Assembly (NCBI RefSeq): GCF_964204645.1 | Contig: NC_134029.1 | Coordinates: 1-64,000 of the forward strand | DNA length: 64,000 nucleotides | Direction of reading: 5' to 3' | Source: Tubulanus polymorphus | Taxonomy: Eukaryota > Animalia > Nemertea | In this document: positions 8,101 to 18,992 of the stretch, one piece after another | Position numbering within the stretch: the stretch's first letter is position 1 | How the letters are laid out: every line of letters begins with the position of its first letter | Program-made: the position numbers and the translations under genes | The notes under the pieces: model-generated | What the model was told of the DNA's origin: nothing | Databases searched by the model: none | What the model saw: the letters and a program-made list of their open reading frames with translations, nothing else

Positions 8101-9032
8101 TATTCTATCAACTTCTCTCTGTAAATAAATAACAAATACATGTTTATTAGAATACCAGCCAATGCCACCCACTCTCTACAGCAGAGATTCCCGATACAAA
8201 CCTTCAGTTTAGGTGTAGACATGGACTGATAATCAGGCATTGGTGTGAAGGGTGATGGAATTGTGGCCTTCTTCTTTTCATCTGCACCAGTAGCACCAGT
8301 AGCACCAGTAGCAGCTGGAGTTCGATACAGCTTAAAAAATAAATCAAATAACATTAAAATTCCTTCAATTACAAATTACTTCTTCAAAATTAATCATCTA
8401 TTTCACACCTGCCGATTAGGTATTTGTGGTTCATTTGATTCACTCCAGATGGAGCTGTCTCCCAATAAATCCTGTATAGATTGATTTAATCTGCCAGCAG
8501 TGACCCCTAGAGGACTGGACTGAAAGTAATATTTACATATATAACAGATTCACTGAAATAACAAATTTGCAGAAATTACAGATTTGCAAAAATAATACAA
8601 TAAAAAATTCACAGTTTGTTTACCTGATAAATATTTTCAATGAATCCATCATCATTGAAATCATCCCAAACATCATTCATTACATCATCACCGACCTCTA
8701 CATCATCATCAAAACCTGTGTTACTCTCTACTACATCATCAAAACCTGTGTTACTCACTGCTACATCATCAAAACCTGTGTTACTCTCTACTACATCATC
8801 AGAACCTGTGTTACTCACTGCTACATCATCAAAACCTGTGTTACTCTCTACTACATCATCAGAACATGTGTTCCTCTCTACTACATCATCAGAACATGTG
8901 TTCCTCTCTACTACATCATCAGAACATGTGCTTTCCTCATCAACAATATCTAATTTCAGTTTATCACCTTTCATAACAGAATCAGCATCACTTTCTTCAT
9001 CAGATAAAAGAGTTAGATCTACAGATATACTG

Positions 9033-9124
<92 letters not shown>

Positions 9125-12100
9125 CACCAGGAGTGCTGAAGAGTGCCCAGCTCCTTTTGTTTCTCTAGATGAACCTACTCCTATTGAACGAGGTAAACTG
9201 ACTGCCCCTCTGCGAGGTGAACGGACTGCTCCTAAACGAGGTGAACTGACTGCCCCTCTGCGAGGTGAACGGACTGCTCCTAAACGAGGTGAACGGACTG
9301 CTCCTAAACGAGGTGAACGGACTGCTCCTAAACGAGGTGAACTACAGAACTGTGAGGAGTTAAATACAGGAGAACTTGTAAACCGATTTCTATCAGACGT
9401 GGCTCCTAATAAAACGAGATTATCATCTTCATCACTAATGGCTAGAAATAAATCTAAAGCATCCTCCTTTATTTCATCTTCATTCTTATCTACATCCATC
9501 GTATACGATTCAGTTTTATCTGCAGTTACAACATTTTCCTCTTCAGTTTCATCATCGCTGAATAAATTAACGCATGATTTTTCAAATTTCTCCTTTGCTT
9601 CATTCTCTTTATCCTCTGGATAGGTTTCCTCAACAATATCAGAATGACTGTTATCGCTATCGGTAATGACAGTTTGAACGAATGATTCATCAGCGTGAAA
9701 ATTACTTTTCCGGAAACTGTCTGTATTGACCGCAGTGACAATTGGACTGACCGCAGTGACCACTGGACTGACCGCAGTGACCACTGAACTGACCGCAGTG
9801 ACCATTGGACTGACCGCCTGTATATGAGGTTCATTCAAGCATAAAACAGGTGAAAATCCCAGTGAAACACGACCTGTATTTACAGCAGCAGCAGCAGCAG
9901 CTGCACCTGACCCTACTGTGGCACCTGTATCTACTGGTGTCGACTGTTTTATAGATGGAGTTAGAAAAGATTCAAATAAACTGCGAGGTGTTGATTTAAC
10001 CAGAGACGAACAGCGACGACTCAATTTACTATAAACAGGACTACAACTTAAACTAAACGTAGCTTCAACAACTGAACCAGGATTAGATACAGCTAAACTA
10101 GGATTAGATACAGCTGAACTAGGATTAGATACAGCTGAACTAGGATTAGATACAGCTGAACCAGGATTAGATACAGTTGAATCAGGATTATATACAGTTG
10201 AATCAGGATTAGAAGTAGCTGCACCAGCTGAGAGCTGATGCTTCTTATCCTGATATTTTTGTAAACTTTCCAGAAAACTTTGTTGCATTTCTTCATTTTC
10301 ATCAAAAGTTTGTTTCATTATATTTTCCTCCAGAAGATTATCCATATCCATAGCAACATCATCATCATCATCATCTAATACCATAGCAACATCATCATCA
10401 TCATCTAATACCATAGCAACATCCTCATTTTTAGTAGTAACATCATCATCAGTAATGTCTGCATCTTCCTCCTCATTTTGTTTATCTCGTTGTGTACTCA
10501 TAAACTCATAAATCTCTTCTAAATCATCATCATTCAGATGATCAGTCTCTGGCAGGTGAGGAGGTTCTATAGAAATCACGTCATCGGACTCGCAATCGGA
10601 TTCCTCCCAGAATTCATTCAATATTTGTGTAATATTCGTAGTTTCTTCGGTTTCTGGTTTTTCATCTTCCAAGAATTTATTACAATAATCTTTCAAGTCC
10701 TTAATATTAAACCTGAAACACATCACAGTACATCAAGTATTGATTATTGGTGTGGCTAAGGAGAGGGTGATTTAGAGGGGAGGGGGGTGTTTACCTTTTA
10801 GAGAGATTGACAAGTTGATCTAAGCTGATTTCAGACCCAGGAACTGGTAACCAACCACAATAAACATAAACTATAAAACTGTGAACTGTGCTGTAACTAA
10901 ACTCACGTAAATCTATAACATCCGTCTGTGAATTCAATTCCTGCAAAAAAATACAATCAATAAAAATAAAACAACAATTGATTTTAAAATAGACCGAGGA
11001 GAATTACCTGTAATAGTGCAGGACATCTGACTGACAAAATCAGTTTATGTAGATTTATAAATCTTGTCTCTTCGCATAAAATTCTACAATCACTGAATTC
11101 ATCGGAGTTATTGATTAACGATTTGTAATCATTTAAACATTCAGCCTGGATCCCCTGCAAAATCAAAGACAAAATAAACGATGTATTGAATCATTACGAA
11201 TTCATAAAGCAGTGATATTTGGGGTGTCTTAAAAATTACCTTTTGATCATCATCGTAAAAACCAGTCATCGATTCACACTGTTCACTAAAGAGGGCTCTC
11301 TCAGCGACGAGTTGAACCAGAGCGTCAGTAGTTTGAGTCATAGGAGCCGAAAAACTGGTCTGATCAGAGGCTGAGGGGATCTCGAAACTGTGGATGTCAC
11401 TACTATCATCGGGGATCTGGAAACTAACATTAGATTTCCGTCTGCCAGGAATGATTGAATATCGCTTTAATCTATGACTAGGTGGCACCACTGTCTCAGG
11501 GTTAATCGGCGGTATCAATGATTGAGTATAGTATGATTCAATTGAATCAATATTGATTATTGATTTATTCCACAGACTGTTTGATTCGTCAGATTTAAAC
11601 AATGATTGCCGAACTGAAGTCATTTTACTGGTGCACATTGTTGATTCTGGTTCCTCAGAAACAGGACACTCCTACAAATAATATCAATATAGCATAAAAT
11701 AAACCCTGAACTGTGGAACTAGGTGCTGAACTGTGGAACTGGGTGCTGAACTGTGGGACTGGGTGCTGAACTGTGGAACTGGGTGCTGAACTGTGGGACT
11801 GGGTGCTGAACTGTGGAACTGCAGCTGAACTGTGGAACTGCAGCTGAACTGTGGGACTGGGTGCTGAACTATGGAACTGCAGGTTGAACTGTGGAACTAG
11901 GTGCTGAACTGTGGAACTGGGTGCTGAACTGTGGGACTGGGTGCTGAACTGTGGAACTGGGTGCTGAACTGTGGAACTGGATGCTGAACTGTGGAACTGG
12001 GTGCTGAACTATGGAACTGCAGCTGAACTGTGGAACTGGGTGCTGAACTGTGGAACTGCAGCTGAACTGTGGAACTGCAGCTGAACTGTGGGACTGGGTG

Positions 12101-13406
12101 CTGAACTATGGAACTGCAGGTTGAACTGTGGAACTGGGTGCTGAACTGTGGGACTGGGTGCTGAACTGTGGAACTGCAGCTGAACTGTGGAACTGGGTGC
12201 TGAACTGTGGAACTGCAGGTTGAACTGTGGAACTGGGTGCTGAACTGTGGAACTGGGTGCTGAACTGTGGAACTGCAGCTGAACTGTGGAACTGGGTGCT
12301 GAACTGTGGAACTGGGTGCTGAACTGTGGAACTGGGTGCTGAACTGTGGAACTGGGTGCTGAACTGTGGAACTGCAGGTTGAACTGTGGAACTGGGTGCT
12401 GAACTGTGGAACTGGGTGCTGAACTGTGGAACTGCAGCTGAACTGTGGAACTGGGTGCTGAACTGTGGAACTGGGTGCTGAACTGTGGAACTGGGTGCTG
12501 AACTGTGGAACTGGGTGCTGAACTGTGGAACTGCAGGTTGAACTGTGGTGCGTGGATGATAGTTACCTGAATAATTGCTGAAATTTTCTGAGCAAGTTTT
12601 AACCGACGAGACTCATGAGTTGTTTTAATCAGGATTGGAGTTTTAACATCAACTCTGAAATACATCAAACAATTCAATAACAAACCTCTACAGTTGACAG
12701 TTAACTCTACAGTTGACAGTTAACTCTACAGTTGACAGTTAACTCTACAGTTGACAGTTAACTCTACAGTTGACAGTTAACTCTACAGTTGACAGTTAAC
12801 TCTACAGTTGACAGTTAACTCTACAGTTGACAGTAAATTTTGGTTATCATATCGCTTACTTCTTCTTTTTCCTTGTTTTTGATTTTTTAGTCGTTTCAAC
12901 CATTGATTTGGATAAAGCTAAAACCATTTGTAATTCTTCAGCTTCTTTACTGAAATTAACATAAAAATTGATTTTTATTTTTCAATTCCTCACAGAAAAT
13001 ATTGAATTATATTCCAGTAAAATCGAATAGTTACGTTTTAGGATGTCGAATCTGTTGTAATACTGTCCTGGGGTTCCTTGGTTTTGTTTTCTGTTTGCTG
13101 ACAACTCCCTATAATACATGATATCACATCAGACCTCGACCGTGTAATCAAGCAACCTCTCCCCTCCATCTCCCCTCCTCTCCCCGGCCTCCTCTCACCT
13201 CTTTCTCATCACAAACCTGATCTAAACATTTATTCACATGTTGCTGGCGTCTCCTTGAATTCATATGTGAAATATCTTTATTACAAACTTCACACAAACA
13301 AATCGAATCATTGTTGAATAATCGATCGAGTAACTTCATTTTATCAGTTCCTACAAATACAACATTATATATAACTTACTTACATCACCAACCAGCTACA
13401 GCAGCA

Positions 13407-13460
<54 letters not shown>

Positions 13461-14740
13461 GCAGCAGCTACAGCCCAACCAGCAACTGCTGATGTTAATA
13501 ACTAATAATGTTACCTTGTGAAGTTTTTTCCAGCACACCGTCAGTGAAATGATTTCTCAAATCAGACTGCGGGACCTCATCACCCATCACTGCCTGACCT
13601 GTTGTGTAGCTATTAGTTACGGCTGTCAATGCCTGTAACAATACATAGAATACCCATATATCAATGTACACATTGTGTGGAGTAACAGATTACTATCTCA
13701 ATGGACTTTACCTCAGGAGCAGCAGGATAGAGTTTAAATTGAGCAGGATGTGTAAACTCTAATTCACTAATATCAAACTGATTGTGCTCAGTTGTTGCAG
13801 CAGCTGCTGAATCCTTTCTCACAGCAGCAGCTGCTGAATCCTTTCTCACAGCAGCAGCTGCTGCATCCTTTCTCACAGCAGCAGCTACTGAATCCTTTCT
13901 CACAGCAGCAGCTGCTGAATCCTTTCTCACAGCAGCAGCTGCTGAATCCTTTCTCACAGCAGCAGCTGCTGAATCCTTTCTCACAGCAGCAGCTGCTGAA
14001 TCCTTTCTCACAGCAGCAGCTGCTGAATCCTTTCTAACAGCAGCAGCTGCTGAATCTTGGTTCCGTTTTAATCTCGGTTTTTGAGGTAAAGCGAACTGTT
14101 TTAAACCCGTTTTAACTTTGACTTTACACAAATCAACGCGTTGCTGATCAGTTTTATTGTGTTGTAAATTTGAAATCTCTTTTGAAGCAACTTGAACTAA
14201 AGTTTGTAGAACTTTACTGGACACGTTGAATATAGAATCATTACCATCTACACACTCTAACGCCCCCTGGTGTCTATCTGCAGGCTCCTGGTGTCTATCT
14301 GTCGATTCTAACGCCCCCTGGTGTCTATCTGCAGGCTCCTGGTGTCTATCTGTCGATTCTAACGCCCCCTGGTGTCTATCTGCAGGCTCCTGGTGTCTAT
14401 CTGTCGATTCTAACGCCCCCTGATGTCTATCTGCAGGCTCCTGGTGTCTATCTGTCGATTCTAACGCCCCCTGGTGTCTATCTGCAGGCTCCTGGTGTCT
14501 ATCTGTCGATTCTAACGCCCCCTGGTGTCTATCTGCAGGCTCTAATGCCCCCTGGTGATTATTTTTTTTATCAGGTCTCACACGTAGTTTTCGTAATTTT
14601 AATTTTTTCCGTTTGGCACTGATTGAAATAAAATCCTCAGAATCACTTCCACTGCTGCAGTCCTCAGGAGGAACCCTTATTTTACCCTTGCCGCGGTCCC
14701 TGCACGGAGCCACCCTCCCTCCACCGCGAGGCGAATCCAT
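5126..14740 (-). CDS. SLX4: SLX4 structure-specific endonuclease scaffold (multi-exon; apparent 4-bp frameshift in penultimate exon)
   Basis: UBZ4 zinc finger CEVCNKDISHMNSRRRQQHVNKCLD (13218-13350); MLR-like EELQMVLALSKSM (12900-12945); BTB domain (10796-11154); SIM-like ISVDLTLLSDEE; SAP region PFTPMPDYQSMSTPKLK/REVDRIGIKPGFGKKRMVTLLTEVYHQTHQ; C-terminal SLX1-binding domain LYRQVLSYVPLKL...INWLDEWGITF. Exon phases are consistent except exon 5917-5824. ATG at 14740, stop at 5128-5126. Confidence 0.9.
5244..5820. repeat. About 43-bp minisatellite with variable poly-C tract (SLX4 last intron)
   Basis: Unit ACACATCGACCCATTTAA(C)nAAACGGTTTT, about 13 copies; long G-runs lie on the SLX4 sense strand. 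Confidence 0.95.
6112..6900. repeat. 32-bp minisatellite, about 24 copies (SLX4 intron)
   Basis: Unit TATATGGTGATGTCATAGTGACTACTCAGCAG, nearly invariant. Confidence 0.97.
7036..7790. repeat. 26-27-bp minisatellite (SLX4 intron)
   Basis: Unit GAGTGAACCCTGGTAAGTGTGGTGGA. Confidence 0.97.
9035..9121 (-). repeat. Coding (CAG)28+CAA polyglutamine tract in SLX4
   Basis: Uninterrupted CTG run 9038-9121 on the + strand, in frame in the large exon 8624-10712. Confidence 0.95.
11707..12548. repeat. 19-20-bp minisatellite, core GAACTGTGGAACTG (SLX4 intron)
   Basis: Units GAACTGTGGAACTGGGTGCT and GAACTGTGGAACTGCAGCT; accounts for ORF 12009-12683. Confidence 0.97.
12686..12834. repeat. 19-bp tandem repeat (SLX4 intron)
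   Basis: Unit CTCTACAGTTGACAGTTAA. Confidence 0.95.
13799..14558 (-). repeat. Coding minisatellites in the first SLX4 coding exon (27-bp DSAAAAVRK; 51-bp PADRHQGALESTDRHQE)
   Basis: Both unit lengths are multiples of 3 and lie within ORF 13661-14761. Confidence 0.9.
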
Positions 14741-14744
14741 CGGC

Positions 14745-15386
14745 TTAAAGACGTCCTCCAAATCCCTTTCTCTCGTCAGTTTCTAAAGCTAATCTTTTTC
14801 TTCTCTCTAAAATCTCTTTCATTCGTTCTTCTTTCTCTCTATCACTTTCTTCCCATCTTTTTTTCATTTTTCCAAAATTAGTTTCATCAATTTTATCAGC
14901 TGTCGCCCTGCGGAAATATACAATAAATCAATCTACATCAAACCCTCTGAAACCGAAACACATCTTTTAACATTTTAGCTGCCAAGTCTAATAAAAAGTG
15001 ATTAACCCTTGACAAACATTAGTAACACAAGCAAGCTATGTCTTGGGTTTAACAGGTTCCGATTGTGCCAAAAGTCATTGAATGTATTTGTGACATGTGA
15101 AGGAGAGAAGAAGCTACAATGTTATACACTATTAAACAGTGAGGGCTCTATACAGTACAGTGTATACACTATTAAACAGTGAGGGCACATGCTCTATACA
15201 GTACAGTGTATACACGTTAGTAACTTTATTGTTTGTATGATACAGACTCTTAACGAGAGAGACTCAGTTAGTATCTGATGAACGCACTCCCAGGACTCGA
15301 GCTACAGACCAGTCTCCACCATCGCTGGCTGCGCCAACCTGTACCAGCAGAATAATCAGCCTGTCGATTGATTGACGCAAGTTACC

Positions 15387-15434
<48 letters not shown>

Positions 15435-15640
15435 TGTATCTGGAGTGGAGTGGAAGCCAGGAAGGAACTGTGCGTCATGTGAATATGAAAGATTTGACGA
15501 TAGATAGGGGCGGATGAAACTTACGCGGCATAGATCCACCAGCCCAGGGTCCAAATTGATCCGACTGCTATAAATATATTCCTCGCTCTATAAGCTTTGG
15601 TTCCTTTCATAAACCTATTTCTATCAATCTCTTTACCCAT
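14745..15640 (-). CDS. 92-aa single-pass membrane protein, COA3/CCDC56-like, upstream cistron of SLX4 (exons 15640-15525 and 14907-14745)
   Basis: ATG at 15640 (GTG ATG G); donor GC|GTAAGT; acceptor TTTCCGCAG|G; phases match. Protein MGKEIDRNRFMKGTKAYRARNIFIAVGSIWTLGWWIYAAATADKIDETNFGKMKKRWEESDREKEERMKEILERRKRLALETDERKGFGGRL. RxRNI + hydrophobic helix + IY + charged coiled-coil tail resembles COA3 (family call is inference). Confidence 0.72.
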
Positions 15641-16015
15641 CACTACTGACCGGTCGACTTAACAAGCACCGCACAATCGGCTCCACACTGTTTAATTGAA
15701 TTGAATATAATGAATTGACTTGGATTGAATTGAATATAGTGAATTGACTTGGATTGAATTAAGAGAATATAATGAATTGACTTAGATTGAATAAAGATAA
15801 TTTCACCAATTTTTCGTTCCCTTTTTGTATTTTTTATCTCTTTTTTTCATGAGTTTTCCTATCTAATTCATTCTTTTAATTTATTATAGAAAATTAATCA
15901 ACATTGGATTGAATTGGTGGCGCTGTAATTCAAGATGGCCGCGCCCATAAAATAAATTAAAAAAAACAATAGACGAATAGTGATTGTTTTGAAACTGATT
16001 GATTGTTTGATAGCG
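15641..16015. promoter_or_regulatory. Bidirectional promoter, COA3-like/SLX4 versus MAP2K5
   Basis: Divergent ATGs only 375 bp apart; YY1-like CAAGATGGCCGC at 15931-15942. Confidence 0.65.
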
Positions 16016-18992
16016 ATGGAGTTAGTGATAAGGATAAGTGGTGTTCCTGGTGGTGATATGGATTGGACCGTTCAAACTCCGCAACAATTAACATTTCAAC
16101 ATATACTGGTAACTATCATCATCGCACTAATTACCGACACAAACCGACCGAGCTATAAGTCTGTATTGTGATTATTTATTGTAGGATGTGATCGCCAGAG
16201 TTGTTCCACATTCAAATGTTGCTGCTTTCGAATGTAAGATTCATTTAGTAAATAGTAAAACGGTTTTTTTAAATCATACAATTTTTTTTCGGCCTTTAAA
16301 ATGTATCAATGTTTGTTTAGATGAAGATGAAGAAAAGGATCGAATAACTGTGAGGACAAATGAGGAAATGATGACGATGATATCATTTGTAAGTTCAGTT
16401 ATTCCTAAAGTAAAAATCAGCCTCTGACATTTCATCGATTGAATCAATATTTTGTATTGTTATTTACAGTATTATAGTTTAATGAAAGAATCGACATCAA
16501 ACTGTGCAGCGGCGCCACCTTTAATCATCTACCCCCGAGGTACCGTTTATTCCGTTCTTTGAATTTATACTGTTTAACTTTAAACCGGGATTAATATCTC
16601 TGTTCTCTATTCATAATACAGTGAGTAAAACACAAGGCAAACGAAACATACATGGATTAAAGGTAATCAGAGTTTACTGTAATCAGGGTTTACTGTAATC
16701 AAGGTTTACTGTAATCAGGGTTTACTGTAATCAGGGTTTACTGTAATCAGGGTTTACTGTAATCAGGGTTTACTGTAATCAGGGTTTACTGTAATTAGGG
16801 TTTACTGTAATCAGGGTTTACTGTATAGGGTTTACTGTAATCAGGGTTTACTGTAATCAGGGTTTACTGTAATCAGGGTTTACTGTAATCAGGGTTTACT
16901 GTAATTAGGGTTTACTGTAATCAGGGTTTACTGTAATTAGGGTTTACTGTAATCAGGGTTTACTGTATAGGGTTTACTGTAATCAGGGTTTACTGTAATC
17001 AGGGTTTACTGTAATCAGGGTTTACTGTAATCATTGTTCTACTGTAATCATTGTTATCAGCCAATCAGATGCGTGGTATTGATAGAGCATATCCTGCCAG
17101 TCAAAAACAACACATCTGATTGGTTTAATACATAGACTGATAGCTGCTGAGCGGTGTAATAGACCAATGAAGGGTCTGTGGACGGAGTTTGTGAGGCAAT
17201 CAAACCCTGGCGAGCGAGGATGGTGTTTACTGTTTTTTTTCTGTTTCAGGTAAACACATCATCTGTATCAAATGTATCACAGGTATCAAATGAAGCGAAG
17301 GAGAGTTCTATTACGAGCTGCAGGTATCTATCACCTCCTCCCTCCCCTCCCTTCCTCCTCCCTCCCCTCCCTTCCTCCTCCGTCCCCTCCCTTCCTCCTC
17401 CCTCCCCTCCCTTCCTCCTCCGTCCCCTCCCTTCCTCCTCCCTCCCCTCCCTTCCTCCTCCCTCCCCTCCCTTCCTCCTCCGTCCCCTCCCTTCCTCCTC
17501 CGTCCCCTCCCCCTGTGATGAGTCAAGTATTTACAGAATTGATGTTTTCAATTTCAGTAATAAAATGGAGAGTGAAGATATAAAGAATATTCTATCAGAT
17601 GGAAGTATAACTGAATCGGATTTAGAATTGATTGAGATTCTCGGTACTGGTAATGGGGGTACTGTTTATAAGTATGTCTCTCTCTCTCTCTCTTTAATTC
17701 AATGCTCACAATGTTTAAACTACATAGTTTTATAAAATATATGTTTATAATTTTCAGAGCTTATCGTAAACCAAATAATCTGATAATGGCTGTAAAAGTG
17801 ATTCCTTTAGATGTAACTCCTCAAATACAACGACAGATTATATCAGAGTTAGAAATACTTTACAAGGTCAGTGAACTCCCCGCTCCCCTCCCTCACTCCA
17901 CACTCCCCTTCATCACTCCCCTCACTCACTCCCCGCTCCCCTCCCTCACTCTGTTAATCCTATTATTCTATATCTATTTCAGTGTAACTCTGATTCAATT
18001 ATTAGTTTTTTTGGTGCTTTTTTCGCTGAAAGTCGGATTTCAATTTGTACAGAACATATGGATGGTAAATACCTGTTATTAACGCCCCCTTATCAAACCG
18101 AAGTGCCCCCTAGTGTCTGTCTGATCGAACTGAGTGTCCCGTGTGTTTGTTTTTTTTTGACAGGAGGTTCGTTGGATAGATTTGGTCAGATTCCTGAGAG
18201 TATAGTCGGTCGTGTTGCAGTCAGTGTAGTGAAGGGTTTACAGTATTTATGGGGAATGAAAATCATGCATCGAGGTCAAATATTGAAATTAAATCATTTC
18301 TATCTCATTTATTTATGATCAATGAATTTAGATGAAGTGAATTTAAATTTCAGATGTGAAACCGTCTAATATTCTAGTCAATACGGCAGGACAGGTGAAA
18401 CTGTGTGATTTCGGAGTTAGCGTTCAGTTAATAAACTCTATCGCCAAATCTTATGTCGGTACCAATATCTATATGGCTGTAAGTAACTGATTAAATCCTT
18501 CAATTATCAGTATCAATAATTGTGATAATATTTGATAATTATTGAATTAAAGCCCGAGAGATTGAAGGGAGAGGAATACAGCGTTCATTCTGAAGTGTGG
18601 AGTTTAGGAGTTTCATTGTTTGAGGTGAGATTAGAGAAAGGGGTGTGTCTACTGTCTGTCAATCATTGCGTTTCACTAATTAAACCCGTTCTATTTCAGA
18701 TGGCTGTTGGTAAATTCCCATATGAGTTTGTAAGTTATGTCTAATATAAAACATGGTTACCCTCTAACCCTAGCAATATGACATGTACTTCATCAAATCA
18801 TATTGATATTTCAGATGAATCCATGTAAATTTTCACTAATGTCTCGGGTGAGTTCAAGCATTTGCAGATTATATCTTCATCTACAGATAAAATATATCCT
18901 CTTCACATCTGACTCAGTTTTAAATGATTTTATATTTCAGCCATTTGACCTGATGAATCAGATTGTTAAAGAGGTTTGTATCAGTGTCTCAG

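Follow-up and report, generated by a model that had tools for sequence, protein, structure and literature searches.

A conserved small-protein gene ends four nucleotides ahead of the SLX4 start codon on a spliced RNA of the ribbon worm Tubulanus polymorphus

How might ribosomes reach the start codon of a large nuclear scaffold protein when the leader of the same RNA holds a complete ORF for an unrelated small membrane protein, ending four nucleotides short of it? The question is raised by the SLX4 locus of Tubulanus polymorphus. The locus lies in the window analysed here, the 64,000 nucleotides at the start of contig C5 in an assembly of 268 Mb and 77 contigs. The first-pass annotation of this window proposed that a spliced, COA3-like ORF and SLX4 form a bicistronic unit; the layout that it described is upheld, and the family assignment is not.

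The first ORF is on the minus strand, behind a 5' untranslated leader (15641..15681) whose extent is that of the longest contig, record 9 of sequencing run X4. Coding exon 1 (15525..15640, minus strand) supplies 116 nt, or 38 codons and 2 nt, and the coding part of exon 2 (14745..14907) supplies 163 nt, specifying 53 amino acids and ending in TAA at 14747-14745. The 617-nt intron between them (14908..15524) is of the U2 type, GT-AG, in phase 2, and its joint is present in contigs of runs X4 and X5. The two segments originally drawn at 15640-15525 and 14907-14745 accordingly make up 93 codons (92 amino acids and TAA) with matching phases (2/1) across a GT..AG intron. The exon 1 product has a basic N-terminus (net +5) followed by a hydrophobic segment that begins at residue 22 (hydropathy peak 1.54, residues 22-38); the peptide specified by exon 2 is 57% charged and likely to be helical. 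Run X4 shows a single variant within the ORF, a synonymous change in a Lys codon at position 14859, for which an allele and an edited base are indistinguishable.

The junction with SLX4 reads TAA-GCCG-ATG (14747-14738) and, as the first-pass annotation had it, lies within one continuous exon: contigs cross it without indels, and the 4-nt spacer GCCG (14741..14744, minus strand) has the same letters in the contigs of X4 and X5. The SLX4 reading frame is shut just upstream by a TAG at 14785, as also proposed, and exon 2 has no AATAAA or ATTAAA ahead of the SLX4 ATG. The several AUGs said to precede SLX4 number seven in the spliced leader, the ORF's own and six others. The spacing by itself is not rare, since at the local density of ATG triplets the chance of meeting one no more than 10 nt from any given stop codon is ~14%. 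An assembly error at the junction is ruled out by ungapped contigs in both runs, and a fusion of the two proteins by these contigs together with the TAG that closes the SLX4 frame. A cis-spliced joint between 15524 and 14744 would leave SLX4 in the wrong frame, and it is absent from the contigs.

Five sequencing runs contain the stretch and none is labelled as RNA, yet X4 (2024) and X5 (2014, a different sample and study) behave as RNA in that their contigs skip introns; X3 appears to be DNA, and X6 yielded nothing. Record 9 of X4 is one unbranched contig of 552 nt that starts at 15681, crosses the 617-nt intron and ends at about 14513, so that it takes in the entire first ORF and ~230 nt of SLX4. 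One contig of X5 spans the same intron, and record 11 of that run bridges 14850-14609. Spliced RNA therefore continues through the stop codon of the microprotein into SLX4 coding sequence. The contigs of X4 and X5 show no intron depth, other joint, gap or loose end, and a start for SLX4 transcripts inside 14908-15524, named beforehand as an outcome that would count against the proposal, finds no RNA-like depth there in either run. Contigs establish presence: they drop rare isoforms, carry one depth each and prove no single molecule. None extends past the repeat at 14542 or to later SLX4 exons. The X4 contig stops on entering a 51-nt tandem repeat, 90 nt beyond an ATTAAA at 14603, a place at which an assembly graph must break.

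That the first ORF goes beyond chance follows from comparison with P0002, a singleton that corresponds to exon 1 of a gene from another organism and whose 2-kb JGI contig ends within the intron. Among 1.84 billion proteins, exon 1 finds P0002 at E=2.2e-4; the only other match is a repetitive protein of 1007 amino acids. The two sequences align from their starts and are 55% identical; in both the N-terminus is basic and ~17 residues form a hydrophobic segment; 12 of the 21 identical residues are specified by different codons, nucleotide mismatches fall 10/11/24 at codon positions 1/2/3, and P0002 has a GT donor at the same intron position and in the same phase. The E-value, the codon changes, the third-position bias and the common intron together indicate that the 92-codon ORF is, as read from these two sequences, a real conserved gene. 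A homologous-protein search returned nothing for exon 1, a two-sequence profile returned P0002 only, two scans of metagenomes gave no confirmed relatives (14 pattern matches, all attributable to chance), and the genome contains no paralogue. MAP2K5, the divergent neighbour of the ribbon-worm gene, was not found in the 1.9 kb upstream of the P0002 gene.

The identification as COA3/CCDC56 does not hold. The genome's true COA3 gene is on another contig (G000:C6:6093164-6093882), where it scores above the Pfam cut-off in a PF09813 profile scan of the genome that does not list the window at E<=1; neither exon 1 of the microprotein nor P0002 has a Pfam match, and hhalign gives a probability of 0.4% for the comparison with COA3. 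Exons were searched one by one, which lowers sensitivity for family assignment, but for the COA3 family the exon-wise test is a fair one, because the C6 gene reaches 29.5 bits against PF09813 with its exon 1 alone. The introns differ as well, that of COA3 being U12-type, in phase 1 and at another position, that of the microprotein gene U2-type and in phase 2. The COA3 intron (L001:1589-2164) is GT-AG, with donor GTATCCTT and branch site TCCTTAAC, and its presence implies that the minor spliceosome is in use; the COA3 gene also has its own AATAAA downstream. A homologue search with COA3 exon 1, intended for a deep COA3 profile, returned nothing.

It is nevertheless conceivable, if doubtful, that the microprotein is a strongly diverged COA3 paralogue or an orthologue of UQCC3/Cbp4, a reading that is compatible with a bicistronic mRNA. 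Its 92 residues, single hydrophobic segment and charged tail are of COA3-type size and layout (about 90-105 amino acids), an architecture generic to many small proteins, and RxRN precedes the hydrophobic segment as it does in COA3. UQCC3 (PF15141) and CBP4 (PF07960) have no match in the genome, in one search that had no positive control; this may reflect loss, divergence or low sensitivity, and it leaves room for a very diverged member of that family. Against such a relationship, neither exon has a usable match in Pfam, PDB sequences or the ESM Atlas, P0002 has none in Pfam or PDB, and PF15141, PF07960 and PF09803 (UQCC3/Cbp4 and PET100) match neither exon; the orthologues of COA3 and PET100 sit elsewhere, the latter on C2; and the intron is unlike that of COA3 in type and position. 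The best description of the microprotein is a conserved single-pass protein of no named family. The architecture would fit a small assembly factor of the mitochondrial inner membrane, a guess from shape only.

The identity of the downstream gene as SLX4 stands. Its first coding segment (13712..14740, minus strand, with a donor predicted from sequence) belongs to the exon in which the microprotein ends and is transcribed to at least about 14513; it stays open for 343 codons, of which one specifies Met, and carries 51-nt and 27-nt tandem repeats that preserve the frame. A predicted coding exon 2 (13515..13632) and an exon with a CxxC...HxxxC zinc finger (13217..13350), which we take to be UBZ4-like, follow on the same strand, each in frame with 14740. 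Further along the minus strand, the exon at 11008..11153 scores above the Pfam cut-off for BTB, with SLX4 BTB domains as its top PDB matches, and the SAP (MUS81-binding) region at 8202..8330 matches PDB 7tuj_A, SLX4, at E=0.003. The domain order UBZ, BTB, SAP and C-terminal CCD is present, with UBZ and CCD as read from the sequence; PF09494 gave no score on the split CCD exons.

These observations are probably best accounted for by a bicistronic mRNA whose chief product is the microprotein, with small amounts of SLX4 made through reinitiation. A single promoter near 15681 would generate one spliced mRNA carrying two separate genes, and the same molecules would carry the whole SLX4 ORF, whose exons are in frame from 14740, with no other Met in the first 343 codons. 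Most ribosomes would initiate at the first AUG, where both -3 and +4 are G, and produce the microprotein, leaving SLX4 as the minor product. Plain leaky scanning to the SLX4 AUG is unlikely, because six more AUGs intervene (two of the six with A at -3) and the SLX4 AUG itself has C at -3. Two other routes are more likely. Along the first, which takes about half of the weight of the bicistronic reading, a ribosome that terminates at the TAA would reinitiate 4 nt downstream. Along the second, given about a third, ribosomes would leak through to an out-of-frame mini-ORF of four codons (14844..14856, minus strand), whose AUG at 14856 is flanked by A at -3 and G at +4 and whose stop lies ~100 nt before the SLX4 ATG, and would reinitiate 100 nt later. 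Both routes would yield little SLX4. Such translation as occurs would clear the many downstream exon junctions, sparing the RNA from nonsense-mediated decay. The pairing would most likely reflect promoter economy, in a layout used repeatedly in the genome, with no functional link to DNA repair; nothing in the analysis supports a connection between mitochondria and DNA repair.

The first route has its counterpart in the termination-reinitiation of caliciviruses and influenza B virus, in which a long first ORF is followed by a start codon in another frame, no more than 20 nt from its stop (PMC10275272). The ribbon-worm junction, 4 nt with a frame offset of 1, falls within the spacing of ~20 nt characteristic of a TURBS. 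The route is weakened, in that reinitiation is efficient after uORFs of 10-30 codons and after long ORFs usually needs extra elements (PMC10275272), none of which is supported at this cellular gene. A TURBS comprises a structured upstream element with an 18S-complementary motif; at the ribbon-worm junction the only UGGGA is at -115, where it codes for Trp. This motif is not above chance, and none of the three sister junctions described below contains it. The predicted fold of the junction region is no better than that of shuffled sequences (z=+0.89), which gives no indication of unusual structure. How ribosomes of cellular mRNAs gain access to a second ORF once they have translated a long first one is listed as unknown in a review (PMC10275272).

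A pair of overlapping transcripts might instead be responsible, although this is the less probable by some way: the 3' UTR of a microprotein mRNA would enter the first exon of SLX4, perhaps ending after an AATAAA at 14158, and a rarer SLX4 RNA would start in the intron or in exon 2. Such an arrangement would spare ribosomes the passage of seven AUGs; contigs omit rare isoforms and report one depth each, and the AATAAA is followed by a GU-rich stretch. Yet chance predicts 0.7 AATAAA for that SLX4 exon, exon 2 is nothing other than purine-rich coding sequence, and neither X4 nor X5 shows RNA-like intron depth, a branch or a loose end. No monocistronic SLX4 mRNA is seen in the contigs, which cannot show absence.

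An operon in which a spliced leader is added in trans at the AG of 14745-14744, yielding a monocistronic SLX4 mRNA, is very improbable, because the acceptor is a poor one. In its favour, this AG is 3 nt ahead of the ATG, a comparable AG is found just before the SBDS start at one of the sister loci, and contigs could clip the short tips of leaders. The sequence in front of 14744 is purine-rich, with 5 T between -25 and -6, where 13 other acceptors (5 verified by RNA and 8 inferred) have 9-15; it has A at -3 and a further AG upstream that is absent from all 13. The ANAPC13 and UQCC5 junctions likewise have no T-rich acceptor, and none of the three sister junctions possesses one. The microprotein and MAP2K5 transcripts show no loose 5' ends in contigs, which may clip short leaders, and a cut at this position would leave the upstream RNA with neither 3' UTR nor poly(A) signal. 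The ORF might also have arisen by chance, or be a uORF with a regulatory role only, its peptide being unimportant. This notion draws on there being one homologue, matched over exon 1 only, and can be virtually dismissed in the face of 55% identity, strong third-position bias and a shared intron position in another organism, along with an X4 variant within the ORF that is synonymous.

The bicistronic reading gains support from three other loci in the genome with the same layout, confirmed from sequence only, at which the spacers are 2, 19 and 48 nt. At the first (L009:1457-2145, G000:C45), the LYRM7-like ORF runs through TAA-CT-ATG into an intronless SBDS ORF of 228 codons. At the second (L024 1501-3204, G000:C6, minus strand), 48 nt separate the ANAPC13 stop from an adaptin-beta-like ORF (AP4B1) that has no introns and comprises at least 477 codons. 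At the third (L025 1479-1503, G000:C11, minus strand), the stop of a UQCC5-like ORF is 19 nt ahead of the UQCC6 start. LYRM7, AP4B1 and UQCC5 are named by resemblance and not by profile. Neither the SBDS nor the adaptin ORF has introns, a hint that each may be a retrocopy captured downstream of a small gene; SLX4 has many and did not arise in this manner. A broader generalisation is possible and is offered tentatively: that operon-like mRNAs occur genome-wide without trans-splicing, large downstream ORFs such as SLX4 and SBDS being reached by cellular termination-reinitiation after ORFs of 75-110 codons across spacers of 2-4 nt, and that the microprotein is the first member of a family of membrane microproteins not yet described from invertebrates.

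The human dual-coding genes SLC35A4, ASNSD1/ASDURF, MKKS and PYURF-PIGY are arranged in a comparable way. MIEF1 is likewise reported to be a human dual-coding gene with a functional uORF protein (PMC6283296). As in these genes, a conserved microprotein, likely the more abundant product, precedes an unrelated main ORF; the microprotein upstream of SLX4 differs in having no Pfam or PDB sequence match to those proteins. Drosophila has 196 annotated bicistronic mRNAs (PMC9681215). The sloth1-sloth2 bicistronic mRNA of the fly encodes UQCC5/SMIM4 and UQCC6/BRAWNIN with a 5-nt spacer, and its second ORF is reached by leaky scanning past a weak first AUG (PMC9681215). A spliced mRNA and a small single-pass protein whose stop is a few nucleotides before the second start (5 in the fly, 4 here) are common to both systems. 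The fly ORFs, however, are both small, are related and serve one pathway, whereas the second ORF here specifies a large multi-exon nuclear scaffold; and the first AUG, weak in the fly, is a good one in the microprotein, with six more intervening. As read from the C11 locus, the sloth1-sloth2 (UQCC5-UQCC6) linkage is kept in the ribbon-worm lineage.

The precedent cited by the first-pass annotation, in which Drosophila CCDC56/COA3 and mtTFB1 share one bicistronic mRNA, is correct, as cited in 10.1101/704403. The two cases are alike in that the leader of a larger gene encodes a small membrane protein unrelated to it. The protein upstream of SLX4 is not COA3, whose gene is on C6, and the precedent is for this reason an analogy of layout and not of family. 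The two ORFs at the ribbon-worm locus do not overlap and each is a conserved gene, as is characteristic of animal bicistronic mRNAs. The layout is thus of a known animal kind; for the pairing with SLX4 no report was found, nor was one found of an SLX4 uORF protein or of ribbon-worm bicistronic mRNAs, in a literature search that covered few subscription papers. What the locus adds is a conserved small protein, unnamed in family libraries, that annotation at one ORF per mRNA has overlooked. The combination of a good first AUG, six further AUGs and a 4-nt spacer makes it a clean natural case for access to a second ORF in animals, and several such units in one genome permit a comparative test.

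The 5' ends of the spliced contigs, 15681 on the minus strand and 15995 on the plus strand, leave ~313 nt between them, which bears out the short promoter that the ORF and MAP2K5 were said to have in common. This divergent promoter (15682..15994), bounded by contig ends that are not mapped start sites, includes an AT-rich repeat at 15694-15801 and, about its middle, a YY1-like motif read from sequence, CAAGATGGCCGC, at 15931-15942. The first exon of the neighbour (15995..16108, plus strand, ATG at 16016) is represented in a spliced contig and runs away from the microprotein-SLX4 unit; the earlier identification of this gene as MAP2K5 is confirmed, its kinase exon included, just as that of SLX4 is by the BTB and SAP matches. 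Run X4 has a synonymous A>C change at 16031, in MAP2K5 exon 1. SLX4 is less than 15 kb away from the end of the contig, and its coding exons (13797-14542 and 8696-10428) contain many tandem repeats with units of 21, 24, 27, 30 and 51 nt and a run of 29 Gln, all of which preserve the frame; introns near these repeats contain long arrays.
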